A stretch of 64,000 nt of DNA from Selaginella moellendorffii (Eukaryota; Plantae; Lycopodiophyta): positions 62,001 through 126,000 of the forward strand of contig NW_003314366.1 in NCBI RefSeq assembly GCF_000143415.4, in the 5' to 3' direction. Positions within the stretch are counted from its first letter, which is position 1. Each line of letters starts with the position of its first letter. Of the stretch, positions 1-27,100 are shown piece after piece. The position numbers and the translations under genes are program-made. The notes under the pieces are model-generated. The model made no database searches and was not told the origin of the DNA. It saw only the letters and a program-made list of their open reading frames with translations.

Positions 1-3000
1 ACACACTTCCTTTTCCGGAATTTGTTAGCGTCCAACACATTAGTGTTCCTCGCCTAACTTTGTCACTTGGATTCCTTCCAAGGGATTCCACGGCCCTATC
101 TTGGCCACCCATCTTTTGCTCCTATCCGTTGATTGTTGCACCAAGCAACATCGAATCTCTACCTCCCTCCTTGAGGTATTCTTTTGATTCCATAGCAAAG
201 GCTCTGCTTTGCCAAGACTAGGGTGTTCGCCCCTAGTAAGTCTCTTTAGCATCTTCTGTTGTGGGCTCTATCCACGGCCCAACTTTGTGACCCTCCCATG
301 GGTCTCTTTAAAGACTACTTTCCTTGGACACACTATGCCATCGCAATGACATAGCTCATTTCCCTAGGGTGCTTTTCCCACTTGGTCACCTTGACCAAGC
401 CACACCATCATTAATAGTTCAAATCAACACTTTGAACTAGGAACCTTATTCCTTAACCCAAACAAGGACCTTGTCCTTATTTAGCCACAAGATCACCTAG
501 TGATCTCACCTCGGCACCTTAACAGGTTTGCCAATAGGTACTAGGTCTTCCAGACCTTTAATTGGTTAACTACAACCCCGGGGGCATCCCCCACACTTGG
601 CGGTGCGCCCAAGCCAGCCCTTTCGGCCAAGGGTCCATAGCAACTGAGATTAGGTGTTCCCATCTCACTCACCACGTCCTTGGTGCCACTTGCACCAAAG
701 CGTTCAAGTTAGATATGCCGAGCTTTCACACTAAGCAATCTAACCATGCATCACGACTCCGAGGCATCCCTCGCTTGGCGGTGTGCCCAAACCAGTCTCC
801 CCACTGAGAGTCCATGACCACCGAAATATGAGTGTCCTCATATTCCAAACCATCACCACGCCCTAGTGATTTGGGACTCGAACCCAAGCACTAGAGGGTC
901 GGGACTCGAACCCAACCTCTGTATATGCATCTACGGACGGCATCACACAAGATGCCTGGCGTGACTCCCCACGCCGGTGCACCAACTTTTATTTAAAGCG
1001 CGCTACAAATCACAACTTAGGAACCTAGTTCCCCCGCACTGCCAAGTCCTCTCACTTGGCAAGCCTGTGATCATGCATGGACTCCTCCATGCTTGGCCCC
1101 ATGGCCCACCCTTTTTGAAGTTATCACCTTCAATTAGGGTATTTGTTCCCCTGACTTGCCAATCTCGCTTGGCAAGTCCTCCGACCACTGTAGCATGGTT
1201 CCTGCATAAGCGTGAAAGTCCTTGACCATCGACTTTCGTTCAAAGCCCTCTCTTTGAACACTCAGGAACTACTTCCCTAACCTTGATAGCCTTGCCTCAT
1301 GGCAAGCTTCAAGACCACGCTTCTGCTGCGCCACTCTGATTTCGCGCGTTCCATGAACCATTTACACTTGGCCTTTCTAGGTACTAAGCTACCTAGAATC
1401 GTCTTTGGGAACCTTGAAGGAACTCTGTCCCTCAGCTTGCTAAGGCCTCCCTTTTTGCAAGCCTTCCAAATGCCACATAGTCTAACATGGACAATTCCAT
1501 AACTTAGACTCTCCATGGCATCACGGTTGCTAGCGGCAACACCCTCGAGCCCCCACTTGATTCTCCACTCCCAGCTGGCATAACCAACCTTGGTTATGCC
1601 CTTCGATTTCTATGGTTCAGTTCCATCCCAATACTACTTGCCTTTTGGCCCCATATGTTTCCTTTGGTTATTCTCCTCCAGACCAGGAGGATAGCTTTGC
1701 ACTTTCTATCATGCCTTAGCAAGTATTCTTAGGGATGAACCTACCCAATAGCCCAGGGAGTGGTTCCTCAATCCGGGTATGCTCACCTTATAGTCCCACA
1801 CACTGGGATTACATTGTTGCTTATGGGCCTTTACATGCCCATCACTAGCCTTGCCAAAATTCCATTTTTGGCTTTGTCCAACTCGGGTAGACAGTCCTCT
1901 CTTGTCTCCGCAACCTTGGACATTTGGATAGCACCTTCTATCCATCATTCGTTAGGGACTTAGTCCCTTGGGCTTTATCCATTGCCCTTGCGACATCAAA
2001 CACCACCTTCTAGTGTTCTAGAGCGTTCGGGTGTCCCAATGATGGCTTTCTTGACAATGAGTATTTCCTTTTATGACATTGACTTACTATATCGCAACAT
2101 AAGCAACTTATCCCCCGTAAAGGTATATCCGACTTCCCTATGCTAGAAGTCTTAGGTAGCTACCTTCTACCCGTTTAACCAGTTATTTTGCACCTTTTGC
2201 TTAGTTGCCTCATAGTTGTCAAGTCCTACAACTCATTGTTTGGTGCTTTCACACCTCCATCATTATCTGGGTCACCACACTCCAACTGTATGCTCTGCAG
2301 CTTAGGCTATGCCATTCCCATTTCCATTGGGATTCCTTTGGCAAGGGGTTCTCATGAACCCACCAACATAGCCTCAAGGTACCACACCTTGGCACATTTG
2401 GTGTCTCCACACCATCGGCTCCACGAGCTTACCTCTATGACACTTCCCCTTCGTGTTTAAGTCTTTGCCAAGACCAACACCGCTCTTTCTCAGGCCAACC
2501 ATCCGTTAGCACTGCACCATAGAGGTCACACACAACTTTGTGTCAAAGTTGTTTTCTTCTGGGAACACCTTTCCCATAACTTTAGCATGGCACATTTTGC
2601 CATCGATGAGATACCCTCTGTTCTCATCCTTGGATCCTATGATCCCCCCCCCCCAATCCTTCATGGGGTACAACACACCTCAGTCCAAATGCTCCAATCA
2701 GTCCTTTTAGGACCTTTCCTTGACTCTACTTGAGTCATCCAGCAGTTTTGGACTTGGTTCATCCACAGACCCGTAAGGTCCCACTTGTGAGGCACTAGCT
2801 CACTGGAATACACTTCCTGCATTCCTGTCCTACTCAGAAGGACTATTTTCACAAGTGTTACTCTGACACTTGTTTTTGTTCTCTGGGGCAACCTCTGCCC
2901 CTTAGGACTACTTGTCCATGTGATGAGAATACCAACTCATCTCTAAGTACACCCCCCAACTCCTTGGGTTGTTCCAGCATTTATTACAGGTAGCCCCGGC

Positions 3001-3446
3001 TACCATTTCAAGGACTTGAGTCCTCTTCCGTATTTGACCTCCCACGGTCATTACTTCTGGTCTCATATTCATGAGCACCAACCTCAACTATATGAGGATA
3101 ATCTTGTGACTCCCTTATTGCTTTGGAGTCTTTATCTTTTCTGTGATCCCAACTTTAGTTGTTTACCACAACTAAATTGGCCCGTTTGCTGAGTCAAACG
3201 CTCATTTGGATCACCTCCTCAACTCAATGAGGAAAACCTTGCACTGTTCCCAAGATCCCAAAGTCGTTCCATTATTGGCCCCTTTTCTATCCACCACCTT
3301 GTCTACAAGTTCACACATGAACTGTAATGGAGAGCCATGTCTTCCCGACCTGCTACTCCTCAAGGATAGGCCCACTTCTCGGACCTTCCGTTGCCAACAC
3401 CAGTGGTGATATACTTGAGCACCAATAAAAGTCGGACTAAGGAACA

Positions 3447-3458
3447 GCTCCGATACCA
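3447..3458 (-). promoter_or_regulatory. Primer-binding site (tRNA-iMet) of family A copy 1
   Basis: Minus strand reads LTR end ...TACA-ACT-TGGTATCGGAGC, the canonical plant iMet PBS. Same site at 14996-15007 and ~26935-26946. Confidence 0.85.
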
Positions 3459-3461
3459 AGT

Positions 3462-4521
3462 TGTAAGCGACTAAATTTTTCCATTCTACTTTAGTCACTT
3501 AACCACACCTCTGACCACTTGGAGGAGTCTCATTCACAACCTCCATAAGTCCAATCCAGGACTTGGGACTTGCTAGCCCCGAGAATGGCATCCATGCCAC
3601 TCAACATTTGCACTTGGTCCAAGTGCTCCACGTGTCCGATCCCATGACCGACACTCAAAGGTACCACCGACATAGCAGCCCGTTACGCTAAGGCCATGCC
3701 CAATCACCTTTGCCACACTGGTAGTCCAATACCACTTGCATCACCGTCTTGGCTCTCCAAGACTAGGCAAACCATCCGTGAGTGGTCATCTCAGATCCAC
3801 TCCTTAGCATCCTTAGGATGCCCACCGACAAGGGGAATAACCTTCCCCAATATCCCTCTGTCAGTCCCCACTAAGTCCCTTTCTGCCCCTGGCCGTGTTT
3901 GCCAACACTACCACTGGATCGAGACCCACAAGCCCGACCACTAAGTCCCACGGTCCTCTGGGACTTCCTCACCACACGACTGTGTCCTTGGTCACTACCC
4001 CAGAGGACTGCTCCTCTTCCTTTCCACAGTCTGGGCCTTTGGGACAACATTTCGGAACACCGTGGCCTTACGCGAGCCACCTGGGTACTCTCCTCGCCTT
4101 CTGCCCTTGGGTGCTCTAGCCATAGGCTTAGAGCGGGTTCCGTTGAGCCACACCAGGTATCCAAGTAGGTAGTGCCACCCACACTTGGACTGGGAGCATC
4201 GGCCAGTCGATCTCCCGGGGGAACTAGAGCCGGCTCTTGAACACTTCACCAAGCTACCCCGCTTGTCGGTCTGTGTTCACTCTAGTCTTGGACTTCCCAG
4301 TGGGCAGCTCATCACCCAACACTGGGTCCGGCCTTCCTGGGCCAAACTGGCCTTTCCTGGCCAAACTGGCTCCACTGCAGTCCTCCCCCTACTATACTTT
4401 TGGAGCTCACCAAACCCCCCAGGGTCTGGGAGACGAACGCTTTGGGCTTTCACCCTCTCAGACTCGAACTCGGACTCGGACTCGAACTCGGACTCGGACT
4501 CGGTCTCGGTCTCGGTCCCGA

Positions 4522-4553
<32 letters not shown>

Positions 4554-5286
4554 CCGGTCTCGGTCTCGACTTCGGACTCCATCTCGGGTCCATCTCGGAC
4601 TCCATCTCGGACTCCATCTTGGACTCCATCTCGGACTCCATCTCGGGTCCATCTCGGACTCCATCTCGGACTCCATCTCGGGTCCATCTCGGACTCCATC
4701 TCAGACTCCATTTTGGGCCAGGGGCAGAAAGGGACTTAGTGGGGACTGACAGAGGGATATTGGGGAAGGCTATTCCCCTTGTCGGTGGGCATTCTAAGGA
4801 TGCTAAGGAGTGGATCTGAGATGACCACTCACGGATGTTTGCTTAGTCTTGGAGAGCCAAGACGGTGATGCAAGTGGTATTGGACTACCAGTGTGGCAAA
4901 GGTGATTGGGCATGGCCTTAGCGTAACGGGCTGCTATGTCGGTGGTACCTTTGAGTGTCGGTCATGGGATCGGACACGTGGAGCACTTGGACCAAGTGCA
5001 AATGTTGAGTGGCATGGATGCCATTCTCGGGGCTAGCAAGTCCCAAGTCCTGGATTGGACTTAGGGAGGTTGCGAATGAGACTCCTCCAAGTGGTCAGAG
5101 GTGTGGTTAAGTGACTAAAGTAGAATGGAAAATTTAGTCGCTTACACTCACCAAACCCCCCAGGGTCTGGGAGACGAACGCTTTGGGCTTTCACCCTCTC
5201 AGACTCGAACTCAGACTCGGACTCGGACTTGGACTCGGACTCGGACTCGGACTCGGACTCGGACTCGGTCTCGGTCTCGGTCCCGA

Positions 5287-5324
<38 letters not shown>

Positions 5325-5857
5325 CCGGTCTCGGTCTCGACTTCGGACTCCATCTCAGGTCCATCTCGGACTCCATCTCGGACTCCATCTTGGACTCCAT
5401 CTCGGACTCCATCTCGGGTCCATCTCGGACTCCATCTCGGACTCCATTTCGGGTCCATCTCGGGTCCACCTCGGACTCCATCTCGGACTCCATCTCGGAC
5501 TCCATCTCAGGTCCATCTCGGACTCCATCTCGGGTCCATCTCGGACTCCATCTCGGGTCCATCTCGGACTCCATCTCGGGTCCATCTCGGACTCCATCTC
5601 GGACTCCATTTCGGGTCCATCTCGGACACTTCCACGTGTCATGTGTTGGTTCTTTTGGGTCCCTTTTTGGAGCTCGCTTTTTGCTCACTTCGTGCTCGTT
5701 CCTCAAGCACTTCGTTGGGAGTTCCACTCCCGCTCTTGACTTTTCAAGTCGGAGCTTTTGGTCCAAACGTGTTACGCTCGTTTGGCTCTCGCTTCGGCCA
5801 CTACCACGTGGCGCCCTTCCGGCTCCACTTTGGGGCCTAGGGATTTTGTGTCTCACA
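3462..5857 (-). repeat. 5' LTR of family A copy 1, containing an internal inversion/duplication
   Basis: TG...CA termini; homologous to LTRs 21118-22872 and 26950-28710. 4716-5146 is the reverse complement of 3462-3894, and 4406-4715 is repeated from 5147. Confidence 0.85.
4458..4712. repeat. LTR-internal tandem array (GACTCG)n-(GTCTCG)n-(TCTCGGACTCCA)n
   Basis: Visible hexamer and 12-mer periodicity. Recurs at ~5200-5625, ~22115-22640, ~27946-28480 and in degenerate form at ~15545-15670. Confidence 0.95.
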
Positions 5858-5924: not shown

Positions 5925-7071
5925 TGTCGCGCATGTGACTTCGGGTATCGAAAGTTACCTGTCGACCAGTCCTTACGGACACTCTTACCTTACTGCCACG
6001 ATGGCAGGAGGTCGGTATTGCTGGACCCTTTATTAGCCCCTCTTGTGCTAGTGGAGTTAACTGGGCATTTCGAGTGTACTTAGACCGGACGAGCATAAGG
6101 ACGGAATTCCTACGTGTTATTAGCTAAGCATACTTAGCCCGGTAAGGAGTTCCCGTCTCGTTTTGTCTTGCACTTGCTAGTGACAAGAACCTTCGCGTAT
6201 TGAGATTGGTCCCTCAATATCGCTAGATGATAGCTTACCGTGTCTGCCAAACACCCTCGCTATCATGCCCTTTGTGTTAGTCTTATTTCGGTCCCAAATA
6301 CTATTTATAGAAAGTGTCTAGATTCGCTCATTTGGCATATCTACGGAATGTAGAGATCGGCCTGAACACAATGGTGTTTGTCCCATGTCCAAATTCGCAA
6401 TCTAGCGCCATTCCATATTTAGTAAGTTTCGCGCTTGTCCCAGAGACTAACTCCTGGTACTAAGGGTAGGCTTGGGGTGAAAGCCCAAAGCGTGTGTTCC
6501 TCAAGGGGGGGGGGCTATGGGGGGTTCCAAATGTATAGTAGGGATAGTGGGTAGGTCGGGCATGGCTGACCAACCTGAGGCATAGTCTAGCTCCCGCTTG
6601 CGTGCCTGTCCTTGTTCTGCGTCCGGCTTGGGTCTAAGCCCAAGTTCCATTCCATGCTAGTTGGTGGAGTACCCATGTCCTCGCATTAGGCCACCGGTAT
6701 GCCGAAATAGCGCCAGACTCTGTTTGGCTCCGTTTTGCGTGCTGGTCCTGGCATTGGGATGCTGGTTACTCTAGGACTGTTCCAAGTCGCTCCGGGCCCC
6801 TGTCCCTTCGCTCCTTGGGCTTTATGCTCGGGAGTTGCTCCGTGGTTCGGTTCCATCACTCCTTGGCTCCATGCTTGGGAGTTTGGAACCGTTCCTTCGT
6901 TCAATGGCCCAAGGCCTTGAACCTCGGGTTCCTATGGACACGTGGCATGGACACGTGGCATGTGACACGTGGCATCTGTCACGTGGCACAAAGAGGGTTT
7001 AGGTTCCGCTTCGTGGTGTTATCCTATGGTAAATCACCATAGGATAAAGGGTAAAAACCACGTGCGCTACA
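5925..7071 (+). repeat. 5' LTR of element B (1147 bp)
   Basis: Near-identical to 12046-13179: about 5 C/T substitutions and one 13-bp indel by eye. Confidence 0.95.
6936..6990 (+). promoter_or_regulatory. Cluster of four G-box/ABRE motifs (CACGTGGC) in LTR B
   Basis: GGACACGTGGCATGGACACGTGGCATGTGACACGTGGCATCTGTCACGTGGCAC; three copies in the 3' LTR (~13057-13097). Confidence 0.6.
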
Positions 7072-10000
7072 TTTGGTATCAGAGGATGAGTCTCAGCGAG
7101 TACTATTCAATGAGATTGGGCAACTAGTCTCGTTGCATACGCAGAGATGAAAACGATGATCCGAGTGGGTACACGTTTGATGCAAAGGGTTCACATTCGT
7201 TCCTTGGGTATGGTTTTGGTTACCTTTTGTACCTAATAATGTGAGCTTGCGCTTAGGCTCACAAGAGGGTTGAGTTTTTCCGTTCGCACGAGTTTGAGCT
7301 TGGACTCGTGAGTGAGGCGCATTAGCAACTCAAGGTTACACTTTGAGTTGGCAGGATTAATGTTAGCCTATCAGTGGTTCAATGAGTTGTTCCTTGTACC
7401 ATGGGTAAAAGCAAACTTTCCCTGAGTTTGCTATGAGTGGCAAATAGGCTAGTCCGTAGCTGTTTAGCACGGCACTAGTGGATCCTTCCTAGGCATGGTG
7501 ATAAGTGGATCAATTAAGATTGTAGGGATAAGTCTATTGGTTCAAATAATCATTGCCGTGCTCTCTCATAAACTTTTCTTCGATTGAACTAAAGGCAGTG
7601 CAAAAGCAAGTTTGAGGTTAAGTCAAAGATGAGACCGAAAAGAGAGTCATTAGGGACGAAGGATCAAACACGTAAATCATTTTCTCTTCCAGAAAGATGA
7701 TTTGCAACGAGGTGTGACTCATTGCTCGTGTTCACATTATGCAATCAAGAGTCCCTACCTTGATGTATGTTGGAAATGATAGTCTTACAAATGGCAAGTT
7801 GTGGGATGGATAACGGTGAAGCGTTATACCATTTTGTCTAGGCTTGCTATTGGAAGACTTGGGTTGCAATGCTCAATTCTTTTCCAGGGAATCTTGCTAT
7901 TGCTCCTTGAGTAGCTTGGTGTTGGATTAGTTTTGAGTTTGGTCGGAAAGAGAGTGGCATGACCTTGTCCGTGTTGTGAACAAAAGTTAGTGGTGTTAAG
8001 TGTTATAAATCTCTATCGATAAAGTGTGGCATTTATGTTGCATTTTGTCAAATCGAGTTGACACTTGATACTCACATAAACCTTTGAAGTAATGACATTG
8101 GCATTGCTCATATTGTTGCTTGATTGATGATCAAGTCATTGTGATACTTATATCATATCCATGTGATAATGAGCAATGTGTTTACGAAGTTGCTTGGTTA
8201 ACGATGATCAACCCCAAAGTGGTTGATGGTGAAGCTAGTCTACTTGCACGAGTAGCATTGTAGTAGCTTTGACTGAATTCTCAATGGTGGTCCATTATGC
8301 TAAGCTTAAGTTGGTTCCTTGTTCCTTGAGGATTTGCCCATAAGGTGTTGGAAAGGGTTGTAGCATTCATTTGCTATAGCTCATTAGTTGATCCGTTAAC
8401 ACTTGGAGTAGATTGTTGGATAGAGAAGGTGTGAGGTTGAGGCATTGACATTACTAGCACTTGTGTTAGTGGAAGTGGCATTATTATTTTAAGTGATGAG
8501 GAATTTTCCTTAGAGCTTGATTTTTCATGTCATTTTTCTTGTTAGTGTTTTGGCTTCACATTGGATTTTGAAGGTGGTTGAAGAAAAGTGTTAGTGCGAT
8601 GTGGATATCCGAAGATGTGGTCTTCGTGATCAAGCCTTGGATGTTCACTTTGCATTTTGCGGATGTTGGTGTTGGATGTCAGAAGTATGGGCAAAAAGAT
8701 GTTCGATGCTTAGACATACTGTGGATCTCGAGAATTGGTGTTGAGGTGAACCTATGTGAAATTGTTAGTAGGAGGAAGTTGGTTGAGTCTTGAAAGTTTG
8801 CATTCCTGGATTGAGAGTCATTCTTTCTCTAGGATGGAAAATTTTCCACAAATTTTCTTAGACTTTTCCAATGGCTGATCTGTTGGTCACTTTGGCCGAA
8901 AACCATTCCGTTTTCGTAAGCCAGTACAAACTAGTGAAGGGGTTGGAGTTGACTTTGGTTGGCTTAGACCTTAGTAAGTAGTTTGTATGATGTAGCCCGA
9001 AAGGGATGCTAACTTTTGGGGCTAAGGCAATTGAGTTGGATAGAGTCTGGAATTGGTGTAAAAAAGTGGCCGTTGCACTTTTCTAAGAAAGATGACCCTT
9101 GTGTCGTTCTTCTAGCGTTTGCTTGGTGGCAGGTTGCACCTTGCATTTCATTAGACTCTATGAGAGTAGTGAGCTCTCACTAATCTTGACTTAGTCTTGG
9201 TAGCCCTGCGCCTTGGCTGAGGATGGTGATGTCCAACTTAGTTGTTTAAGTTTGAGATGTTGGTACCCGTACTATAGCTTTGTCTAAGTGGAGGTTGTGT
9301 ACCGATATGAGTCCATCTCATGGTCTTCACTTTAGTTTCAACTGAGTGTTGATCATGCATAGCTAGCCTCTTCAAGGCATGCTCAAAGCTATTGCCTAAA
9401 TGCATTAGTGAGCTTATTGCGGTTGAGTTGGATTCAAGTGGTCATTTAGTTTATGCTTGTCCATGAACCTTTATCTCATATTTGGGGTATTACGTTTATG
9501 TTGGATAAGTATATGACTCAATGGCAAGAGTTTAGTGTTTGGGTCTTGTGAAGGCAAGTTGAAGAGTGATTGCTCGTTGCTTTGCAACTAGTGATTACTT
9601 GTAGACTTCGTCAAAGACTGTTAACACTTGCTTCACTCGATGATGATTTAACAGTGATGGGTTTGCTTTACCGGATGGTGTTACGGAGGATCGTGTCGTT
9701 AGATTTACATGGGTTTTCCATGTTGGCATATCGACTCTACCTTTGTCGATATCATTTGGTTGCGTTTAGTTCATAGTGTTGGATTTCATGGAGTCTTGGA
9801 TGTGGTGATTCACTCCTTGAGGAAATGTTATCTATAGTTGAGTATTGTTGAAGGATTAGTCTCGGATACTGAGTAAAGTATCTTCGACTTTGGTTAGTTT
9901 GGTTGCAAGAGAGTTTTGAGTGGTGATTCACTCTTGCTTTCTTCTAGCTTTGTGATGGTGTTGATGGCATTGAAGTGGTGCCTTGTCGTTGACAATATTA

Positions 10001-12045
10001 ATGTTGAGATTTGAGTGAAATGAGATGTCTATCCTTAGGATTGATATTGAGTTTCATTAGTCTTGATGTAGATAGTGTTGATGATTTGGCTATGACTTTG
10101 TGTTATTAGCATTCTTGCATTTGCTAGTTAGCAACTATGTTGACGTTCAAACAAGCTGAGTGGCAAGTTGAGTTAGTTGTGTTCTAGACGAGATTATTTA
10201 GTAGGGGTTGAGCTTTGGCTTTTCCTTGAAAAGTGATTCAGTCGTGAACTATGCTAACTCTACAAGTGGAAGAGTTAGAGATCAATATTGAAATATTTGA
10301 ATCCTTATTGGATTTGAGTTGGGATATATTGATCATTAATGGTTCTTCTTGTGCTTGTTATGAAGTGAGTTACGTCTTGCTAAAGATGGATTCATGGAGG
10401 ATCGATTAGATGATCACTTGTTGAGCATAGCTTCGTTATGCTTAGCTTTTGGATTGATGCAAATCTGCTCTTCATTAGCTTTGGCATTATAAAGTTTGAC
10501 TTATGGATGTGTCGAGGGAGATATTGTGGGTTGCACCATGATTTCTTCTTTAGCATTGAAGTTAGTTTATGCAAGACTCGTGATTATTATAGGCAAGACT
10601 TTGCTATAGGCTTCTTTGAGCTTTTGGTTCCTTGAGTTTTGTGCTCATTGTTCCATTTGTTAGAAGTAGTTGGGGAAGGCATTTTTGCTCCTTAGCTTTG
10701 ATATTGAAGTTAGCTTTTGCATTTGGCAATCATTGGTGATGATTGACTATCATCTAAGATAGTTGATTATCCTTGTCAAAATGTTTTGCTTGATTATTGT
10801 TAGTATAGAATGATTTGCCGTTCTTCGGGATGGTAGATTCTTTCTTCGATGATGATTATGCATTTCTTTATTGATAGGATGATTGATGATCTTTCATGAT
10901 GGTTAGTTGTTCTCCTTGGTGGCTTATGGCTTTTCGCAATACCACATGTTCTTTGTGGTTTGCTCTGGATTGGTCTCTTGGGTTTGAGATATCAATAGGA
11001 TGTTGCTGACACTTGCTTGAGCAACTTTGGTTCTTTGGTATTGTTGGCCGGGATCTATTCAGATTGGCTTTTGTGATAGTTGCCATGAATGAGTGTTTGT
11101 TGGTCTTACCACATTCATTCTATTGTGTTGATTGTTGCTTGGGTTAGTGCTGATAGATTGGGATGTTATTTCCTTCGGGTGATACATTCGCGAGCATCTT
11201 GCTTGTCAGTCAATGATACTTTGTGTTCTTTGAGTTATCTTTAGTAAGTTGTTTGGCATACTATCTACCATCTTCGATAGTGAAGTTTCATCATTGAGTG
11301 TTCTTGATGATATATTTGCTATTGAATTTTGTTGGATGGTGATTCCTATATTTACCAATTATGATGATCTTGGTGGTTCCTGTACTATACTACTAGTTTA
11401 TCAGATGATACCTTACTTGGAATACTTTTGTGTTCTAATCTAAGATATATTCACTGATAATTAAGTCTCTAAGCTATCATTGTCTATGACGTTGATATTG
11501 TCCATCTATTAATCTTTAAGTTTGGGCCAGTATAGGCAGACTGGCTTCGGCACTTCGTGTGCATGGTGAAATCTCTAGTCATGGGGTAGCTACTGTCGAC
11601 TGGTCACATAACCCGCCTCTTTGTCGATGTTCCTTATTCCGTTAAAAGGGCGTGACCGTGTAAACAACTCTAACTGCCTGTTTACAGTAGTCTATCTAAA
11701 CCTTACCGACGGGTTTGGTTTCTTTGCTTAGGAGGGTTGGGGCCTCTGGCTTCTCTCTCTATGTCTCTGCGGGCAGGGGCATATCACTCTTTTGTAGCTG
11801 GGTGACTCCCAGAGCAACAAGGGTGGCTAACTTTGTTGGTCATTTCTTTGTCGGCGACGGCCGGAAGGTGTCTGAGCTGGTAGCGCATCCGCGTTAGACA
11901 AAGAGGTTACCCCTAACTCATTTAAGTTGGTGCATTTCTCACATAGTGTGAGTACCGTGAACTTTTTCTGGAGTTGTTTCCTTGGCGGTATTCTAGACTC
12001 GAGTATGCATCGACGAGGACGTCGATCTTCCCTAGGGGGGGAGAG

Positions 12046-13179
12046 TGTCGTGCATGTGACTTCGGGTATCGAAAGTTACCTGTCGACCAGTCCTTACGGA
12101 CACTCTTACCTTACTGCCACGATGGCAGGAGGTCGGTATTGCTGGACCCTTTATTAGCCCCTCTTGTGCTAGTGGAGTTAACTGGGCATTTCGAGTGTAC
12201 TTAGACCGGACGAGCATAAGGACGGAATTCCTACGTGTTATTAGCTAAGCATACTTAGCCCGGTAAGGAGTTCCCGTCTCGTTTTGTCTTGCACTTGCTA
12301 GTGACAAGAACCCTCGCGTATTGAGATTGGTCCCTCAATATCGCTAGATGATAGCTTACCGTGTCTGCCAAACACCCTCGCTATCATGCCCTTTGTGTTA
12401 GTCTTATTTCGGTCCCAAATACTATTTATAGAAAGTGTCTAGATTCGCTCATTTGGCATATCTACGGAATGTAGAGATCGGCCTGAACACAATGGTGTTC
12501 GTCCCATGTCCAAATTCGCAATCTAGCGCCATTCTATATTTAGTAAGTTTCGCGCTTGTCCCAGAGACTAACTCCTGGTACTAAGGGTAGGCTTGGGGTG
12601 AAAGCCCAAAGCGTGTGTTCCTCAAGGGGGGGGGGCTATGGGGGGTTCCAAATGTATAGTAGGGATAGTGGGTAGGTCGGGCATGGCCGACCAACCTGAG
12701 GCATAGTCTAGCTCCCGCTTGCGTGCCTGTCCTTGTTCTGCGTCCGGCTTGGGTCTAAGCCCAAGTTCCATTCCATGCTAGTTGGTGGAGTACCCATGTC
12801 CTCGCATTAGGCCACCGGTATGCCGAAATAGCGCCAGACTCTGTTTGGCTCCGTTTTGCGTGCTGGTCCTGGCATTGGGATGCTGGTTACTCTAGGACTG
12901 TTCCAAGTCGCTCCGGGCCCCTGTCCCTTCGCTCCTTGGGCTTTATGCTCGGGAGTTGCTCCGTGGTTCGGTTCCATCACTCCTTGGCTCCATGCTTGGG
13001 AGTTTGGAACCGTTCCTTCGTTCAATGGCCCAAGGCCTTGAACCTCGGGTTCCTATGGACACGTGGCATGTGACACGTGGCATCTGTCACGTGGCACAAA
13101 GAGGGTTTAGGTTCCGCTTCGTGGTGTTATCCTATGGTAAATCACCATAGGATAAAGGGTAAAAACCACGTGCGCTACA
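12046..13179 (+). repeat. 3' LTR of element B (1134 bp)
   Basis: Directly follows the polypurine tract; direct repeat of 5925-7071. Confidence 0.95.
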
Positions 13180-13311: not shown

Positions 13312-15901
13312 AACCTACCCGATAACTTAGGGAGTGGTTCCTCAATCTAGGTATGCTCACCTTGTAATCCTACACATCAGGATTAACATTGCTACTTATG
13401 GGCCTTTATATGTCTATGACTAGTCTTGCCAAAATCCCTTTTTGGCTTTGTCCAATTTGGGTAGACGGACTTCTCCTGTCTAATGCTCATTGCCAAAAGA
13501 AGGCCATCATTAGGACACTCAAACACTCTAAAACACCAGGAAGTGGTGTTTGGTGTCGTGAGGGCATTAGATAAGGCCCAAGGGACTAAGTCCCTAGCGA
13601 ATGATGGATAGGAAGTGCTATTCAAACGTCCAAGGTTGAGAACTATATCGCAACATGAGCAATTCATCCCCTATAGGAGTATGTATAACTTCTTTATCCT
13701 AATAAAATGTCTTAGGTAGTTACCTTCTACCAGTTTAATCAATTATTTTGCACTTTTTTGCTTAGTTGCCTCATAGTTGTCAAGTCCTACAACTCATTGC
13801 TAGTGCTTCCACACCTCCATCATTATTTTGGGTCACCACACTTTAACCACATGCCTTCTATCTTAGGCTATGCCATTCCCATTTCTATTAGGATTCCTTT
13901 GACAAGGGGTTCTCATGAACCCGCCAACTTGACCTCAAAGCATTATGCCTTGGCACATTTGGTGTCTCCACACCATCAGCTCCCTTTATAACACTTCTTA
14001 CTTGTGTAAAGGTTTTTGCTAAGATCAACATAGTTGTTTCTCATGCCAACCATCCATTAGCACTACACCATAAAGTTTACACAGAATTTCATATCAAAGT
14101 TGTTTCCTCCTGGGAACCTCTTTTCCACTACTTAGTATGGCACATTCTGCCACCAATGAGATACCCACTATTCTCATGCTTAGATCTTATGATCCTCCCC
14201 ATCTTTCGTGAGGTACAACACACCTCAGTCTAAGTCCTTCCACTAGTCCTCTAAGACCATTCCTTGACTCCTTTTGAGTCATCCAACTCTTTGCACTTTG
14301 CTAATCCCACGACCCATAAAGTCCTACTTTTGAGGTGCCAGCTCTTTGGAATACATCTTCTTGTATTCATGTTCTACTCATCAGGACCACCATTATAAGT
14401 GTTATTCTGACACTTGATTATTTTTCGATCTTTGTGGGCTACTTTCGCCCCTTAGGACTATCCATCCATATGATGAGAACAGCGACTCATCCTCTAAGTA
14501 CACCCTCAACTCCTTGGGTTGTTCCAGCATTTATTGAAGGCCTTGGCTACCGTTTCAAGGACTTATGTCCTCATCTGTATTTGACTTCCCATGGTCATTA
14601 ATTTTGGTCTCAAATTCATGAGCACTAGCTTCAACTACATGAGGGTAATCTCATGACTCTTTTATTGTTTTAGAGTCTCTATCTTCCCCATGATCCTAAC
14701 CATAGTGGTTTACCACAACTACATTAGCCAATTTGTTAAATCAAACACTCATCTGGATCACATCCTCAACTCCTTTTTGAAAAAAACCTTATATTGTTCC
14801 CAAGATCCCAAAGTCATTCCCTTATTGGCCTTTTTCTATCCACCATCTTGCATAGAAGTACACATATGAACTATAATGGAGAGCCATGTTCTCCCGACCT
14901 GCTACTCCTCAAGGATAGGCCCACTCTTAGGACCTTCCGATGTCAACACAAGTGGTGATATACTTGAGCACCAATAAAAGTGGGACTAAGAAACAGCTCC
15001 GATACCAAGTTGTAAGTGACTAATTTTTCCATTCTACTTTAGTCACTTAACCACACCTCTGACCATTTGGAGGAGTCTCATTCACAACCTTTATAAGTCA
15101 AATTCAGGACTTGGGACTTGCTAGCCCCGAGAATGGCATCTATGCCACTCAACTACGAGCCTCATGGGTACTCTCCCCACCTTCTGCCTTTGGGTGCTCT
15201 AGCCATGGGCTTAGAGTGAGGTTCTGTTGAGCCACACTATGTATCCAACACTTGGACTAGGAGTATCGAGCATTTGATTTCCCAGGGGGAACTAAAGCCA
15301 ACTCTTGAACACTTCACCAAGCTACTTCACTTGTCAATCCGTATTCACTCTAGCCTTGGACTTCCCAATAGTTATCTCATTACCCAATAGCTAGTATGGC
15401 CTTCCTAGACTAAATTGGCCTTTCCTGGCCAAAACTGGCTCCACTGGGGTCCAACCCCCACACTCTTCCTACAATACTTTGGAACCCCCCCCCCCCTTCA
15501 AGACGATTTGCTTTGGGCTTTCACCTAACAGCTTGTATTAGTATTCGGACTCGGTTCCATCTTGGACTCCATCTGGGACTCCACCTCAGGTCCATCTTAG
15601 ACTCTATCTCGGACTCCATCTTGGGTCCATCTCAGACTCCATCTTGAGTCCATCTCTAACTTTCTCGGACACTTCCACGTGCCATGTGTTGGTCCTCTTG
15701 TGTCCCTTTTCTAAAGACTCACTTATTGCTCGCTTCATGCTTGTTCCTTGAGCACTTCGTTGGGAGTTCCATTCCTACTCTCGACCTTTCAAGTCGGAGC
15801 TCTTAGTCCAAATGTGTTACATTTGTTTGACTCTCGCTTCAGCCACTACCACATGGCACCCTTTTGGCTCCACTTTGGGGCTTAGCGATTTGTGTCTCAC
15901 A
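13312..15901 (-). mobile_element. Family A copy 2 (truncated, more diverged; deleted 5' LTR 15011-15901)
   Basis: Aligns with copy 1 from ~1740. PBS at 14996-15007; LTR TGTAAG(15011)...TCTCACA(15901) with a ~470-bp internal deletion; ~160-bp inversion at ~13481-13640. Confidence 0.85.
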
Positions 15902-17883
15902 GAGAGACTTAGGAAACTTGCCAAGAAAAAGCACAAATAAAGTGAATCAACCAGATTTAAGGTAAACATTTTTGTCTTTGCCCTTAGTGTGAGGTCACAG
16001 GCTAATATTGTCCACAAAAATATCTTTCTCTATTTAAGATATATAGCTTCTTCACAGTTAAGTGTTATATTAGCTTCAGGGACAAGGACAAAGAAAAGTT
16101 ATTACTCCAGCCAGGTGCAACAAAGTTTCTATTGCGTATGCACAATTTGTCAGATCAGTATGATATGACATTGGCCCCTTGGATAAGCTCTTAAGATTTT
16201 AACCTTGAATATGCTTTGGGGAGGCTTGGTGTGCTAACAAACATATTTCAATATAAAATGCATGATGAAGACATTTGCATAATTCACCAGTATCTAGTTT
16301 GTTGGGGTCAAATGAATAAGGATGCAAACATCCAAACTGTCTTACAACATTTATCTGGTGTGTTGTTTAGAATGAAAACTTCAAACTCCCTGATGTTTGG
16401 ATGAAGTTTCAACACCATTTCTTCCATCTTGAGCTTAAAATTTTTGAAAGATTTCTCTAGTATAATTTGACCAGACACACTCAAGAAACTTATAAAGCAT
16501 AACAGATGTCTTCTCTAATATAGTTCTTATGTGAGTGATCATATTGAGAATTATCCAATGTTCCAACAATTTTACATGTATGAGTTTTTTAAGAAGAAGT
16601 TGGAGGCAAAGGATTCGCAACGAACTTACCATTTTTACATGACTGTGGCTTTCAATTTGAACTTTATTGGTATGTATACTGATGTATAGAGAGTCACTTT
16701 TATGGATGCTATAATAGAAAAAACATCATATGAAATCGAGTCAAAGATGTTACTTGTATCCAAAGATGTTTCCATATATCAATAAGTTCTACCACTTATG
16801 TGATGATATGTACTATTAAGAAACAAGGTTTATTAGCCAATATAAGAGGAGAAAATATAGTAATGTACTCACATTTTAATAAATATATCTTTGGTATATC
16901 TACTTTTATGCACATGAGTGGTTTTTGTTTGTAAAAAACTCTTATATCATAATAATTATTTACTGTATAATGGGAATCAAACTTGAATATTCCTTTAATT
17001 AAGCCTAATTAATTAGCTAAATATATGTTTTTTAGATTATATAATTAATAAAAATTTAAGAAAATGATTAATATATTAAGTGAGACCTCCAAATGGTCTC
17101 ACTTTAACGAAAATGGGCTTTTTGTATGCCTGAAAAAAACAAAAACTAACATGAAGGGTAGGGAGGAGAAATTTGTGAGTAGTAGTTGAGAATATAGCTT
17201 ATCCTGAAGTTTTTCCAAATTTTCTCTTATAGTTGTAGTTTATAATAGTCACTAAAATTTCTCTTATTGTTTAATTTATATTTCGGTAGTGTTACAGTTA
17301 AAATACAATATTACATAAACTAAATCCATAATATATTAATAATAACAATTCTAATTGGACACAATGATAAACTTGATGATACTTTAGTGGCAACCACATC
17401 ACCACACATAGCTCATCACTCAGCTATATAACATTTATTTATATTAGTATCAACTTCAATATCCTTATAGCTTTCATTAATGTCAAAAATTAACTCTTAA
17501 ACCTATTTTTGTTTAAGAATGTGAGTATGTTAACTTTACTATTTTACATCTAAGTGCTGGAATGATATTATATACTTTCAACCAAAGCTTTGCCTAAAAC
17601 TTTTGATGCACATTTTAAAATATAATTAATATTTTATAATTAAATTTGTAAAATTATCATTATTTGTTTTACCATTATAACATCAACACATGCAAAATAA
17701 TAGAAAAGGAATCTTTCAGTTTTAATAATTAAAATATTGGCACTTGCTATCTACAAAGTCCTTAAATCTCACAAGATAATTCCATCTGCATCTCTCTGCA
17801 ATGGAGAAAGAATTTCAGATTATTTCTCAAAAAAATTCTCAGTTTTACTTACTCTTTTTCACACTGAGCTTTGGCTCCAAACA

Positions 17884-20899: not shown

Positions 20900-21117
20900 C
20901 TGATCCCTTTGTATGAAGCGTTTCAACCGCTGCACATGCACAATCTCTGGAGGATCAGCCTGCTAGACATTATGCTGAACCTCATAAACTTATGGTCCAA
21001 CTTGCCACAACACCCGATACGGTCCTTTCCACTGTGCAAGAAGCCCCTTAGATAAACCACGTACCGTAAGATGGGGAAAACGGACTAACACCAAATCATC
21101 CACTTTGTACTCCACAA
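20900..21117 (-). pseudogene. Gypsy integrase C-terminal GPY/F region (element C)
   Basis: EYKVDDLVLVRFPHLTVRGLSKGLLAQWKGPYRVLWQVGP*VYEV...VHVQRLKRF. Confidence 0.85.
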
Positions 21118-24100
21118 TGTAATTGACTAATTTTTCCATTCTACTTTAGTCACTTAACCACACCTTCGACCACTTGGAGGAGTCTCATTCACAACCTCCA
21201 TAAGTCCCATTCAGGACTTGGGGCTTGCTAACCCCGAGAATGGCATCCATGCCACTCAACCTTTGCACTTGGTCCAAGTGCTCCACGTGTCCGATCCCAT
21301 AACCGACACCCTAAGGTACCACCGATATATGAGCCCGTTACGCTAGGCCATGCTCCTTCACTTTGGTCATATCAGTGGTCTAACACCACCTGCATTGCAA
21401 TCCCGTCTCTCCAAGACTGGGCCATCCGTCCATAAGTGATCATCCCAAATCCACTCCTTGCATCCTTAGGATGCCCTCAGACATGGGGAATAGCCTTCCC
21501 CAATATCCCCTTTCTGGTCCCCACCAAGTCCCTTTCTGCTCAGGGCCGTGTTTGCCAACACTGCCACTGGATCGAGGCCCACAGGCCCGACCACTAAGTC
21601 CCACGGTCCTCTGGGACTTCCTCGCCACACGACTATATCTTTGGTCTTTACTCCAGAGGACTACTCCTCTTCCTTTCCACAGTCTGGGACTTTGGGACAA
21701 CATTTCGGAACACCGTGGCCCTACACGGGCCTCATGGGTACTCTCCCCGCCTTCCGCCTCTAGGTGCTCTAGCCATGGGCTTAGAGCGAGGTTCCGTTGA
21801 GCCACGCTAGGTATCCAAGTAGGTAGTGCCACCCACACTTGGACTGGGAGCATCGGCCAGTCGATCTCCCGGGGGAACTAGAGCCGGCTCTTGAACACTT
21901 CACCAAGCTACCTCACTTGTCGGTCCGTATTCACTCTAGTCTTGGACTTCCCAGTGGTCAGTTCATCACCCAACACTGGGTCTGGCCTTCCTGGGCCAAA
22001 CTGGCCTTTCCTGGCCAAACTGGCTCCACTGCAGTCCTCCCCCTTACTATACTTTTGGAGCTCACCAAACCCCCCAGGGTCTGGGAGACGAACGCTTTGG
22101 GCTTTCACCCTCTCAAACTCGAACTCGGACTCGGACTCGGACTTGGACTCGGACTCGGACTCGGACTCGGACTCGGACTCAGGCTCGGTCTCGGCCTCCG
22201 CCTCGGTCTCGGTCTCGGTCCCGGTCCCGGTCTCGGTCTCGGTCTCGGTCTCGGTCCCGGTCTCGGTCCCGGTCTTGGTCTCGACCTCGGACTCCATCTC
22301 GGGTCCTTCTCGGACTCCATCTCGGATTCCATCTCGGGTCCATCTCGGACTCCATCTCGGCCTCTATCTCGGTCCATCTCGGACTCCATCTCGGTCCATC
22401 TCGGACTCCATCTCGGACTCCACTTCGGACTCCATCTCGGACTCCACCTCGGACTCCATCTCGGACTCCGTCTTGGTCCAGCTCGGACTCCATCTCGGAT
22501 TCCACCTCGGACTCCACCTCGGACTCCATCTCGGACTCCATCTCGGACTCCACCTTGGACTCCATCTCGAACTCCATCTTGGTCCATCTCGGACTCCATC
22601 TAGGACTCCAACTCGGGTCCATCTCGGACTCCATCTCGAACACTTCCACGTGTCATGTGTTGGTCCTTTTGGGTCCCTTTTTGGAGCCTCGCTTATTGCT
22701 CGCTTTGTGCTTGTTCCTCGAGCACTTTGTTGGGAGTTCCACTCCCGCTCTCGATCTTTCAAGTCGAAGCTTTTAGTCCAAACGTGTTACGCTTGTTTGG
22801 CTTTCGCTTCGTCCACTACCATGTGGCACCCTTCCGGCTCCACTTTGGGGCCTAGGGATTTTGTGTTTCACAACTCCACCACCCATAAATGAAGTTCGAT
22901 GTCCTCATCGAACGGTAAACCCTTTTATAAAGTAACACCCGCAGGTATTACCATTTCCATCCTTGGCACCCAGCCAATATTTGTCTATGGTTTGACCCCG
23001 AAGGCTCACCATGCCTTGTCCATCCTCTAAGGAGCATAGTCTCTCCAACATAGAGACTCACTCGACCACCTAGGGTGGTTTGCTCCCTTTTATTGGTTCA
23101 GTTCTCGCTAAACCCGTTAGAGACACCCTCTCTAACTCAATTCCACTACTCATTCTCTAGTAGTTTCAGATTCTATTGACATAACCTCTGCATTTTGGAA
23201 CTTTTAATTTTGACTTCTCCAAGTCAATTTCCCAGGTGTCTCCGACACTTTATGTTGCACATGGTGCAACTCCACTTCCCTATCCTAGGAAGTTCTTTAC
23301 TTGAGGGTACCATCATCCTCTCTTCGATATCGTGCCACCTTTAGGCACTAAGTTCCAGTTATCATAATTGGTGCTAGGGCTGCCCATGGCCCTATTATTT
23401 GGCTACCTTACCGCTCCCCCCTTTGGAGCATCCACTTTCGCCAAATCGGAGCAATTGGGAATCCATCCTTGGGGAAACATTGCCTTTCCCACATTCCATT
23501 AGCACCCAACACATTAGTGTTCTCGGCCTAACTTTGCCATTTGGATTCTTTCCCATGATTCCCATGGCTCTTTTCTTAGCCACTAGTCTTTTGCTCCTAT
23601 CCTTGATTGTTGCACCCAGCAACATAAGATCGCTACCTCCATTTTTGAGGTTTCCTTTCGGTTCCATAGCAAACACTTTGTTTTTCCAAGTCTAGAGGGT
23701 GTTCACCTCTAGTACGTCTCTTTAACATTTTCTGTCGTGGGCTCTATCCACGGCCCAACTTTTTGAGACCCTCCCTTGGATCTCTTATAGAAACTACTTT
23801 CCTTGGACTTACTATGCTATAGCATTGACATAGTTCATTTCCCTTAGATATTCTTTCCACTTGGTCACCTCGACCAAGCCACACCTTTATCAATAGTTCA
23901 AATCAACACTTTGAACTAGGAATCATATTCCTTAACCCAAACAAAGACTTTGTCCTTGTTTAGCCACAAGATCACCTAGTGATCTCATCTTGACCCCTTA
24001 ATAGGTTTATCAATAGGAACTAGGTTTTCCAAACCCTTCTAAGTTGTTGACTATGACCCTGGGGGCATCCCCCACACTTGGCGGTGCGCCCAAGCTAGCC

Positions 24101-27100
24101 CTTTCGGCCAAGGATCCATAGCAACTGAGACTTGGGTGTCTCCATCTCATTCACCACGTCTTTGGTGCCCTTTGCACCAAAGTGTTCAAGTTAGATATGC
24201 CAAGCTTTCACTCTAAGAAATCTAACCGTGCATCACGACTCCGAGGCATCCCTCGCTTGGCGGTGTGCCCAAACCAATCTCCTCACTGAGAGTCCATGAC
24301 CACCGAAATATGAGTGTCCTCATATTCCAAACCATCACCACGCCCTAGTGATTTGGGACTCGAACCCAAGCACTAGAGGGTTGGGACTCGAACCCAACCT
24401 CCGTATATGCATCTACGGACGGCATCACCCTAGATGCCTGGCGTGACTCCCCACGCCGGTGCACCAACTTTTATTTAAAGCACGCTACAGATCACAGCTT
24501 AGGAACCTAGTTCCTCCACACTGCCAAATCCTCTCACTTGACACGTCTGTGATCATGCATGGACTCCTCCATGTTTGACCCCATGACCCACCCTTTTTGA
24601 AGTTATCACCTTCAACTAGGGTATTTGTTCCCCCGACTTGCCAATCTCGCTTGGCAAGTCCTCTGACCACTGTAACATGGTTCCTGCATAAGCGTGGAAG
24701 TCCTTGACCATCAACTTTCGTTCAAAGCCCTCTCTTTGAACACTTGGGAACTACTTCCCTAACCTTGATAGCCTTGTCTCATGGCAAGCTTTAAGACCAC
24801 GCTTCTACTGCGCCACTCTGATTTCGCACGTTCCATTTACCATTCACACTTGGCCTCTCTAGGTACTAAGCTACCTAGAATCATCTTTGGGAACCTTGAA
24901 GGAACTTTGTCCCTTAACTTGCTAAGGCCTCCCTTTTCGCAAGCTTTATAATTTCCATATAGTCTAACATGGACAATTCCATATTTTAGACTCTCTATGG
25001 CATCTCGGTTGCTAGCAACAACATCCTCGAGCACCCTCTTAGTTCTCCACTCCCAACTTGCATAACCACCGTTGGATATGCCCTTCGATTTCTATGGTTC
25101 AATTCCATCCCAATACTACTTGCCTTTTGGCCCCATATGTTTCCTTTGGTTATTCTCCTCCAGACTAGGAGGATAGCTTTGCACATTTTACTATGCCTTA
25201 GCAAGTATTCTTAAGGATGAACTTACCCGATAGCCTAGGGAGTGGTTCCTCAATCTTGGGCATGCTCACCTTATAATCCCACACACCGGGATTAACGTTG
25301 CTGCTTTTGGGCCTTTACATGCCCATCACCAGCCTTGCCAAACTTCCATTTTTGGCTTTGTCCAATCCAGGTAGACAGTCTTCTCCTATCTCCACAACCT
25401 TGGACATTTGGATAGCACCTTCTATCCATCATTTGTTAAGGACTTAGTCCCTTGGGCCTTATCTATTACCCTTGCGACACGAAACACCACCTCTTGGTGT
25501 TCTAGAGTGTTTGGGTGTCCCAATGATAGCCTCTTGACAATGAGCATTCCTGTTCACGACATTAACTTACTATATCGCAACATAAGCAATTTATCCCCCG
25601 TAAGGGTATATCTAACTTCCTTATGCTATTAAGAAGTCTTGGGTAGCTACCCTCTACCCGTTTAACCAATTATCTTGCACCTCTTGCTTAGTTGCCTCAT
25701 AGTTGTCAAGTCCTACAACTCATTGCTGGTGCTTCCACACCTCCATCATTGTTTTGGTCACCACACTCTACCACATGCCTTCCAACTTAGGCTATGCTAT
25801 TCCCATTTCTGTTGGGATTCCCTTGGCAAGGGGTTCTTATAAACCCACCAACATAACCTCAAAGTATCACACCTTGGCACATTTGGTGTCTCCACACCAT
25901 TGGCCCCATGAGCCTATCCTTATGACACTACTTATTAGTGTCTAGGTCTTTGCCAAGACCAATATAGTTGTTCCTCATACTAATTATCCGTTAGCACCGC
26001 ACCATAGTATTTGCACCCAACTCTGGGCCAAAGTTGTTTTCTTTTGGGAACATCTTTCCCACAACTTTAGTATGGCACATTCTGCCATCAATGAGATACC
26101 TATTGTTCTCATACTTGGATCTTTTATGATCCTCCCCATACCTCATGGGGCACCATACAACTCAGTCCACATGCTTCAACCAATCCCTTAGGACCATTCC
26201 CTGACTCTACTTGAGTCATCCAGGATTTTGGACTTTGTTAATCCAACAACCTGCGAGGTCTCAGTCTTAGCGGTGCCAACTCACTGGAATACAACTTCTT
26301 GTATTCATGTCTTACTCACAAGGACAATCTTTGCAAGTGTTACTCTGACACTTGATGATTTTCTTGGGGCTAACCTTTGCCCGTTAGGACTACTTGTCCA
26401 TGTGATGAACATAGCAACTCATCTTTAAGTACACCCCCAACTCCTTGGGTTGTTCCAGCATTTATTAGAGGTAGCCCCGGCTACCATTTCAAGGACTGGT
26501 GTCCTCTTCTGTATTTGACCTCCCACGGTCAACAATTCCGGTCTCAAATTTATGAGTACCAGCCTTAACCATATATGGGTAATCTTGTGACTCCTTTACT
26601 CTATTGGAGTCTGCATCTTTCCCGTGATCCCACTATAGTTGTTTACCACAACTATGTTAGCCTGTTTGCTGCGTCAAATGCTCATCTGGATCACATCCTC
26701 ACTCAATGAGGAAAGCTTTACACTGTTCCCAAGATCCCAAAGTCGTTCCCTTACTGGCCCCTTTTTTTTATTTTTTATCCACCACCTTGCCTACAAATTC
26801 ACACGTGAACTGTAGTGGAGAGCCATGTCTTCCTGACTTGCTACTCCTCAAGGACAAGCCCACTCTTAGGACCTTCCGATGCCAACACTAGTGGTGATAT
26901 ACTTGAGCACCAATAAAAGTCAGACTAAGGAATAGCTCCGATACCAAATTGTAATTGACTAATTTTTCCATTCTACTTTAGTCACTTAACCATACCTTTG
27001 ACCACTTGGAGGAGTCTCATTCACAACCTCCATAAGTCCCATTCAGGACTTGGGGCTTGCTAGCCCCGAGAATGGCATCCATGCCACTCAACCTTTGCAC

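Follow-up and report, generated by a model that had tools for sequence, protein, structure and literature searches.

Gene content and element anatomy

We analyzed a 64,000-nucleotide stretch of the Selaginella moellendorffii genome (contig NW_003314366.1, positions 62,001–126,000; hereafter the window), in which an initial annotation had placed a conserved, hairpin-dense RNA domain of a non-coding long terminal repeat (LTR) retroelement at positions 575–1010 (hereafter the flagged region). The window is plant DNA and contains a pentatricopeptide repeat gene, a phosphoenolpyruvate carboxylase fragment, and Mediator-13. Through an exact match of the pentatricopeptide repeat protein, it was assigned to scaffold GL377670.1 of assembly GCA_000143415.2. 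Self-comparison of the window revealed one complete LTR element (copy B), a second copy (copy A), and a truncated third copy (copy C; 13312–15903) that ends short of the flagged region. The element is a ~7.6-kb non-autonomous LTR retrotransposon of the large retrotransposon derivative (LARD) type (Table 1).

The two LTRs of copy B are in direct orientation, each starting with TG and ending with CA on the minus strand. Since the primer-binding site (PBS) and the polypurine tract (PPT) both lie on the minus strand, the RNA of the element corresponds to that strand, which is referred to below as the sense strand. The longest open reading frame (ORF) of the interior encodes 98 amino acids, and the six longest reading frames of the core described below gave no Pfam match at E-values up to 1. 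Together with the LTR pair, PBS, and PPT, these results bear out the annotation as a non-coding LTR retroelement. Copy A aligned with copy B at 88% identity (25–4709 with 23499–28213), and the counterpart of the flagged region in copy B was located at 24055–24490, as annotated. In both copies, the flagged region lies ~60–71% along the interior from the PBS toward the PPT. The sequences flanking copy B, inspected for a possible target-site duplication, are CACAA (21113–21117) and CGCAG (28711–28715); they agree at three of five positions, and both mismatches are G/A transitions. The abundance of the family is extreme: from a single genomic run, 64,888 contig pieces matched the interior of copy B at ≥80% identity.

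Table 1. Features of the LARD-type element, given in window positions.
Feature	Positions	Strand	Remarks
Flagged region, copy A	575–1010	minus	Two old tandem-duplication units and two further hairpins
Conserved core, copy A	688–1387	minus	A/B identity at least 91% throughout, 96–98% over 738–987; no indels
Conserved core, copy B	24170–24869	minus	Bins 24210–24773 show the top interior contig depth
Unit U1 (3′ unit on RNA)	575–762	minus	92.0% identical between copies A and B
Unit U2 (5′ unit on RNA)	755–945	minus	97.9% identical between copies; 58–65% identical to U1
Module hairpin in U2	773–792	minus	8-nt loop GCACACCG; the GGGATGCC hairpin comes next
U1 twin of module hairpin	595–614	minus	Repeat of 773–792 in U2
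T-arm/B-box hairpin I	897–917	minus	7-bp stem, loop TTCGAGT, contains GGTTCGAGTCC; 24379–24399 in copy B
T-arm/B-box hairpin II	871–887	minus	TTGGG[TTCGAGT]CCCAA, nested in a CTAGTG/CACTAG stem; 24353–24369 in copy B
Palindrome-loop hairpin	918–937	minus	8-nt loop GATGCATA with ATGCAT; one stem mismatch in copy A
GGAG-tetraloop hairpin	958–975	minus	GGCGTG..CACGCC stem
Second core GGAG-tetraloop hairpin	1075–1092	minus	
Copy B 5′ LTR	26950–28710	minus	TG...CA ends
Copy B PBS	26935–26946	minus	TGGTATCGGAGC, 3 nt from LTR, tRNA-iMet type
Copy B interior	22873–26949	minus	Complete, non-coding, 4077 nt; 85 perfect hairpins with stems of 5 bp or more; no ORF above 100 amino acids
Copy B PPT	22873–22885	minus	GGGTGGTGGAG, adjoins 3′ LTR
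Copy B 3′ LTR	21118–22872	minus	95.5% identity to 5′ LTR
Copy A 5′ LTR	3462–5857	minus	Rearranged via an internal inverted duplication
Copy A PBS	3447–3458	minus	TGGTATCGGAGC, likewise 3 nt from LTR
Copy A interior	1–3461	minus	Cut by window start; ~600 nt next to the PPT lacking

A conserved core in the non-coding interior

Because two copies and a truncated third occur in one window, a conserved core could be mapped, with the region itself aligned between copies A and B. At the level of the family, conservation of the block is real. It measures ~700 nt and is shifted and longer than the domain initially annotated, which overlaps it in part and forms its 3′ part on the RNA. A/B identity outside the core was 73–92%. 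The copies differ at 24 places within 575–1010. About six differences had been counted over 747–1008; we found eight over that interval, and six in the lowest-scoring 250-column window, which starts at 747 (mean for such windows, 31.7). Compared with the flanks, the core was depleted in transitions (2.0–4.7% vs 9.5–10.9%), transversions (0.8–1.1% vs 3.4–4.9%), and gap columns (0 vs 41), with Fisher p-values from 1e-2 to 3e-6.

CpG sites were also retained, as had been proposed: the observed/expected ratio was 0.66–0.74 in the flagged region vs 0.30–0.41 in the flanks, and 18 of 25 CpG sites were common to both copies (flanks: 1 of 16 and 13 of 49). Lower methylation alone does not explain the conservation of the core, where transversions and indels are reduced along with transitions, and hypomethylation was rejected as the sole cause. 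The residual divergence of the tight core (~2.8%) is about the post-insertion decay expected from the 4.5% divergence of the copy B LTRs; the source lineages would therefore have been nearly identical there while differing by 10–25% elsewhere.

The same block emerged from data beyond the A/B pair. In a genomic run, summed depth of contigs with at least 80% identity to the copy B interior, taken in 141-nt bins, correlated with A/B identity at Spearman 0.80 (p 3e-6). Of all interior bins, the four deepest were those of the core at 24210–24773 (728–1291 in copy A), with 2.0 times the mean of the rest; they came close to the end bins at the PBS and PPT, to which LTR sequence contributes as well. 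A contig from a run labelled as a different organism was 94.7% identical to copy B over 24040–24470, compared with 81–92% for its other pieces, and in a run guessed to be RNA, a piece over 24243–24393 was 98% identical. The annotated deficit of differences relative to the flanks thus held in the A/B pair, in genome-wide contig depth, and in contigs of two other runs. Word searches gave no relative of a 78-amino-acid frame open in both copies and, when made with the neighboring integrase remnant and aimed at repeat-rich loci of the same genome, nothing at E 1e-20.

Hairpins and folding of the interior RNA

All seven stems quoted in the initial annotation were present at their places, and the differences confined to loops (688/689 and 947/949) were real. 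Counting perfect stems of at least 6 bp with loops of 3–12 nt, we found five hairpins in the flagged region of copy A and seven in that of copy B, vs 0.8–0.9 in dinucleotide shuffles (shuffle maximum 3–4). Hairpin density was 11–17 per kb throughout the interior of both copies, ~7 per kb in the LTR, and 0–5 per kb in the genic part of the window; interior hairpins were 6–15 times more common than in shuffles. In 200-nt windows on either strand, minimum free energy z-scores mostly fell between −2 and −10 across the interior, with a few weaker windows, so that folding was better than in dinucleotide-shuffled controls. For the flagged region, sense-strand z-scores were about −3 to −4 and did not surpass those of the flanks; the strongest windows were 401–600 and 1001–1400. 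Because the flanks fold and carry hairpins to the same degree, structure does not set 575–1010 apart: the region is hairpin-dense beyond shuffles, but its density equals that of the rest of the interior.

Along its full length, the interior RNA consists of a chain of ~80–85 short hairpins with purine-rich, C-poor loops and linkers. On the sense strand, loops contain 37% G, 31–33% A, and 10% C, and in the core their G content reaches 45%. Among four-base loops, GGAG occurs most often, in 3 of 17 and in 4 of 14 (p 0.002 and 6e-5 when loop composition is taken into account); it lies on unrelated stems, with four to five cases per interior, two of them in the core. The palindrome-loop hairpin has a perfect 6-bp stem in copy B (24400–24419), and ~0.4 such loops per interior were estimated by chance.

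Changes between the copies were examined for signs of pairing. Single changes in perfect stems were wobble-compatible on the minus-strand RNA in 43 cases and on the plus-strand RNA in 22, against an expected ratio of ~1.15:1 (p 0.026). Paired-site changes preserved pairing more often in the core (34/52, 65%) than in the flanks (137/296, 46%; p 0.016). Mismatch types in interrupted stems, used as a further strand test, gave no significant result.

Two local observations concern the hairpin chain. The most over-represented sense-strand 5-mer is CCAAG (18–21 occurrences vs ~3 expected in interiors 1–3461 and 22873–26943), which mostly forms the 3′ arm of hairpins, such as CTTGG...CCAAG and TTGGCAAG. 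In addition, the hairpin at 24126–24149 of copy B is shifted in register from that at 645–667 of copy A by a cluster of three changes, two substitutions and an inserted base, which create a new perfect stem, GAGAC/GTCTC, in copy B. This is a pattern expected from either a templated multi-base event or tight compensatory selection.

Tandem duplication and compensatory changes

Units U1 and U2 are products of a ~178-nt tandem duplication (nhmmer E 5e-7), the only significant one in a search for internal duplications of the interior. The sequence module reported to occur twice does so in each copy because the region is a tandem duplication; a scan of viral contigs for the module gave no match.

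Alignment of the four unit sequences with RNAalifold gave 38 pairs, ten of which had changed on both sides and were still paired (98.7% of cells paired), compared with zero to two such compensated pairs in slid controls. Using structures predicted from one unit, a less biased procedure, both-side changes remained paired in 11 of 16 cases in copy A and 15 of 21 in copy B, two counts that are not independent of each other; the chance level was ~37%. Many one-sided changes between U1 and U2 break pairs. U1 and U2 amount to effectively one old comparison, and this evidence is therefore suggestive rather than decisive that the units kept their predicted hairpins through compensatory changes. Compensatory change exceeded chance between U1 and U2, but not between copies.

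T-arm hairpins with B boxes

Two hairpins in U2 combine a TTCGAGT loop, closed by GGG/CCC, with an exact B box, GGTTCGAGTCC. A search for the exact B box GGTTCGANTCC gave two matches per copy on the minus strand, and elsewhere in the window the exact motif is absent, the four matches being these two hairpins in copies A and B. The pair arose by a 28-nt tandem duplication inside U2, and the counterpart hairpin in U1 has a different loop. Between copies, the outer stems differ by wobble-compatible steps only. The local fold was no more stable than shuffles (z −1.5).

A tRNA mimic had been among the functions proposed. Resemblance to a tRNA is confined to the two T-arm hairpins: ARAGORN detected no tRNA gene and no cloverleaf, and Rfam, whose search had been suggested, gave no family at the gathering score or, over 400–1400, at E-values up to 10. 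No A box (TRGCNNARNGG, up to one mismatch) occurs on the minus strand at 913–1033, the stretch searched for one 30–60 nt upstream of the B box; a type-2 RNA polymerase III (Pol III) promoter was thereby ruled out. A metagenome scan for two T arms spaced by 8–20 nt returned 29 loci, all of them unrelated tRNA 3′-end duplications or simple arrays. A central polypurine tract was considered separately and ruled out, the core having no copy of the 3′ PPT; the nearest match (24578–24590) contains three mismatches.

Proposed role of the core

In an element free of coding constraint, anything conserved should be a signal that acts in cis. The observation made in the initial annotation was confirmed, and its interpretation as a selected cis-acting structured RNA is partly supported. 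We infer that the conservation reflects selection on the RNA, and a selected cis-acting core is probable. As a whole, we favor the explanation that the block is the selected RNA core of a LARD-type element recognized by the Gag or nucleocapsid protein of an autonomous partner, with a probability of roughly 45%. Any lineage that changed the core would forfeit its capacity for being copied; recognition by Gag or nucleocapsid would lead to selective packaging and probably to dimerization. The guanosine-rich loops on many small stems, including the GGAG tetraloops and the duplicated module with its 8-nt loop, could serve as a multivalent binding platform. Among specific roles, packaging or dimerization seems likeliest, since a protein-less element needs a foreign Gag, nucleocapsid binds exposed guanosines, and LARDs are described with a conserved, structured core; the assignment is tentative, at somewhat less than even odds. 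The zinc knuckles of retroviral nucleocapsid proteins bind exposed guanosines in small stem-loops, the GGAG tetraloop included (PMC7599994).

Several points weigh against this explanation. The hairpins and G-rich loops run along the whole interior and do not single out the core. Compensated pairs were at chance level between copies A and B (2–3 of ~40 changed pairs) and near chance in comparison with copy C (1–3 of ~20–40). Stems show an approximately two-fold lower substitution rate, as ascertainment alone would give when stems are chosen as perfect in one copy, and G·U stem extension on the sense strand was not significantly enriched. The conservation alignment rests on two copies, and the depth measure could also rise if the core were common to another family. 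RNA reads were very rare, with eight from 9.2 million records; their first mate was always on the plus strand, which fits minus-strand RNA if the library is stranded. Packaging signals usually sit in the 5′ leader, but the core lies 2.1–2.8 kb downstream of the PBS. Moreover, replacement of the GGAG loop in HIV-1 had no significant effect on packaging (PMC7599994).

Alternative explanations

The alternative that survives best, though we regard it as unlikely, is a mosaic block without a function of its own. LTR retroelements often recombine during reverse transcription. Template switching between co-packaged RNAs of subfamilies, or sharing of the block with another abundant family, could make it look young and common without selection. 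The blockwise swing of A/B identity from 73% to 98% and the chance-level covariation between copies fit such a history, as does the core divergence of 2–3%, which equals post-insertion decay alone given the 4.5% LTR divergence. Recombination does not, however, explain a CpG observed/expected ratio of ~0.7 compared with 0.3–0.4 elsewhere in the family; furthermore, the same block is the best kept in contigs of two other runs, and the old duplicated units retained hairpins through apparently compensatory changes.

A function at the DNA level appears improbable. Here the two B boxes (GGTTCGAGTCC) would recruit TFIIIC and create a boundary or hypomethylated island against silencing, or would support transcription of a short internal RNA by Pol III. 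Each copy has two exact B boxes, 28 nt apart and unchanged in both copies, within a CpG-rich, CpG-retaining patch, and there are precedents in B2 short interspersed elements, copies of which serve as methylation boundaries (PMC8136502), and in a retrovirus with internal Pol III promoters (PMC12498455). Nevertheless, there is no A box 30–60 nt upstream on that strand and no match to tRNA or another Rfam family, and the paralogous hairpin in U1 has no B box. The conserved block reaches ~500 nt past the B boxes, and the deficit of transversions and indels equals that of transitions, a result that hypomethylation alone would not give.

Slightly less probable still is that the hairpins are by-products of replication, with reverse transcriptase copying one arm from the other during fold-back template switches and the core being a stretch of low mutation. 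The predominance of perfect Watson–Crick stems, the rarity of hairpins with one mismatch, and the three clustered changes that make a new perfect stem in copy B are in line with such a process. If copying errors were symmetric between strands, however, one would not expect loops on one strand to be rich in G/A and poor in C, GGAG loops to recur on unrelated stems, or wobble pairs to favor the sense RNA 2:1, and the family-wide conservation of one block would not be explained.

Least probable of all, and very unlikely in our estimate, is that the core acts through its two hairpins with GUUCGAGUC in a 7-nt loop, read by tRNA-handling proteins (pseudouridine-55 synthase, m1A58 or m5U54 methyltransferases, or export or elongation factors) that would mark, stabilize, or export the RNA or pause reverse transcription: both the tRNA T arm and the stem-loop code GUUCNANNC that TRUB1/Pus4 uses on mRNAs (PMC5340967) are matched by the loop and its closing pairs, and the duplicated motif is unchanged in both copies with outer stems altered only compatibly with wobble, but the fold is no more stable than shuffles, no cloverleaf exists, with ~85 hairpins per element and many families, meeting a well-known motif once is not very improbable, and only ~50 nt of the 700-nt core would be accounted for.

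Returning to recognition by a partner's Gag or nucleocapsid, one elaboration would cast the whole RNA, from an element making up a considerable part of a plant genome, as a multivalent nucleocapsid-binding array of mini-hairpins, with the mid-genome core, built from its duplicated module and the two T-arm mimics, as the true point of recognition and dimerization. We consider this model doubtful. If true, it would represent a new architecture of packaging signals and would model the way in which one parasite, living off another, outcompetes the RNA of its helper. How helper proteins recognize non-autonomous LTR elements is poorly known in plants, and our literature search found no experimentally mapped packaging signal for plant non-autonomous LTR elements. 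The analysis narrows 4 kb of hairpins to a block of ~700 nt that contains the module with the 8-nt loop, GGAG tetraloops, the T-arm pair, and a palindromic loop.

Comparison with known systems

LARDs such as Sukkula of barley (Kalendar et al., 2004) are described in a later source (PMC7215508) with a conserved non-coding core and conserved RNA structure. The Selaginella element resembles them in its long LTRs, multi-kb protein-less interior, PBS and PPT, and high copy number, as well as in a conserved non-coding core with predicted RNA structure and presumed mobilization in trans (PMC7215508). It differs from the LARDs described there in its lycophyte host, its nearly continuous short perfect hairpins with purine-rich loops, and the old tandem duplication and two tRNA T-arm hairpins in its core. 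No sequence relationship to the grass families was noted, although no comparison with them could be made.

The packaging signals (Psi) of HIV-1, with SL1–SL3, and of murine leukemia virus are clusters of small stem-loops that expose guanosines, including a GGAG tetraloop (PMC7599994), and the Selaginella element is similar at the level of sequence. One of its hairpin loops, with a 6-nt palindrome flanked by purines, may resemble a kissing-loop dimerization site of retroviral Psi (PMC7599994). In contrast to those signals, which lie in the 5′ leader beside the PBS, the Selaginella block starts ~2.1 kb downstream, and hairpins with G-rich loops are spread over the whole RNA.

Miniature terminal-repeat retrotransposons (TRIMs) with Pol III-derived sequence include Cassandra (5S) and Helenus (tRNA-like LTRs), the latter with Helenus-1_SMo of S. 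moellendorffii (PMC10886601). The present element shares with them the combination of a non-autonomous LTR retroelement and a motif of Pol III genes (B box or T arm), and with Helenus-1_SMo the host. Helenus, however, measures ~325 bp and carries its tRNA-like part, with A and B boxes, in the LTR (PMC10886601), whereas the Selaginella element is 7.6 kb long and has a T arm only, which is tandem-duplicated, deep in the interior, and without an A box.

Rearrangements and neighboring elements

Several further features of the element family and its surroundings were observed. The 5′ LTR of copy A repeats its first part in inverted orientation over 431 bp (3462–3894 and 4716–5146; 98.4% identical); the duplicate sits within the tandem-repeat zone of the LTR and may be a fold-back rearrangement. 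In copy C, a 157-bp segment (13482–13638) is inverted relative to copy A (1911–2065) and copy B (25395–25548). The LTRs of the family carry arrays of 12-nt tandem repeats (4427–4750, 5186–5521, 22106–22684, and 27932–28522), which give rise to spurious low-complexity ORFs of 250–360 amino acids on both strands.

One contig of the run guessed to be RNA (X17) tracks the element from 24136 to 24209, after which at least 255 letters bear no likeness to the window; this could reflect a different genomic junction or a transcript that is chimeric or reads through.

A Ty3/gypsy-type integrase remnant (rve and H2C2 zinc domain) on the minus strand at 28812–29696 directly adjoins the 5′ LTR of copy B, which was probably inserted in or beside an older autonomous element; this older element showed no similarity to the core. 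On the plus strand, 5925–13179 is occupied by a second, younger non-coding LTR element with LTRs at 5925–7071 and 12046–13179 (98.4% identical), a PBS, TGGTATCAGAGG, at 7074–7085, a G-rich PPT before 12046, and no ORF of 200 amino acids or more. It contains six to seven hairpins per kb, and its unpaired parts are T/G-rich rather than purine-rich.

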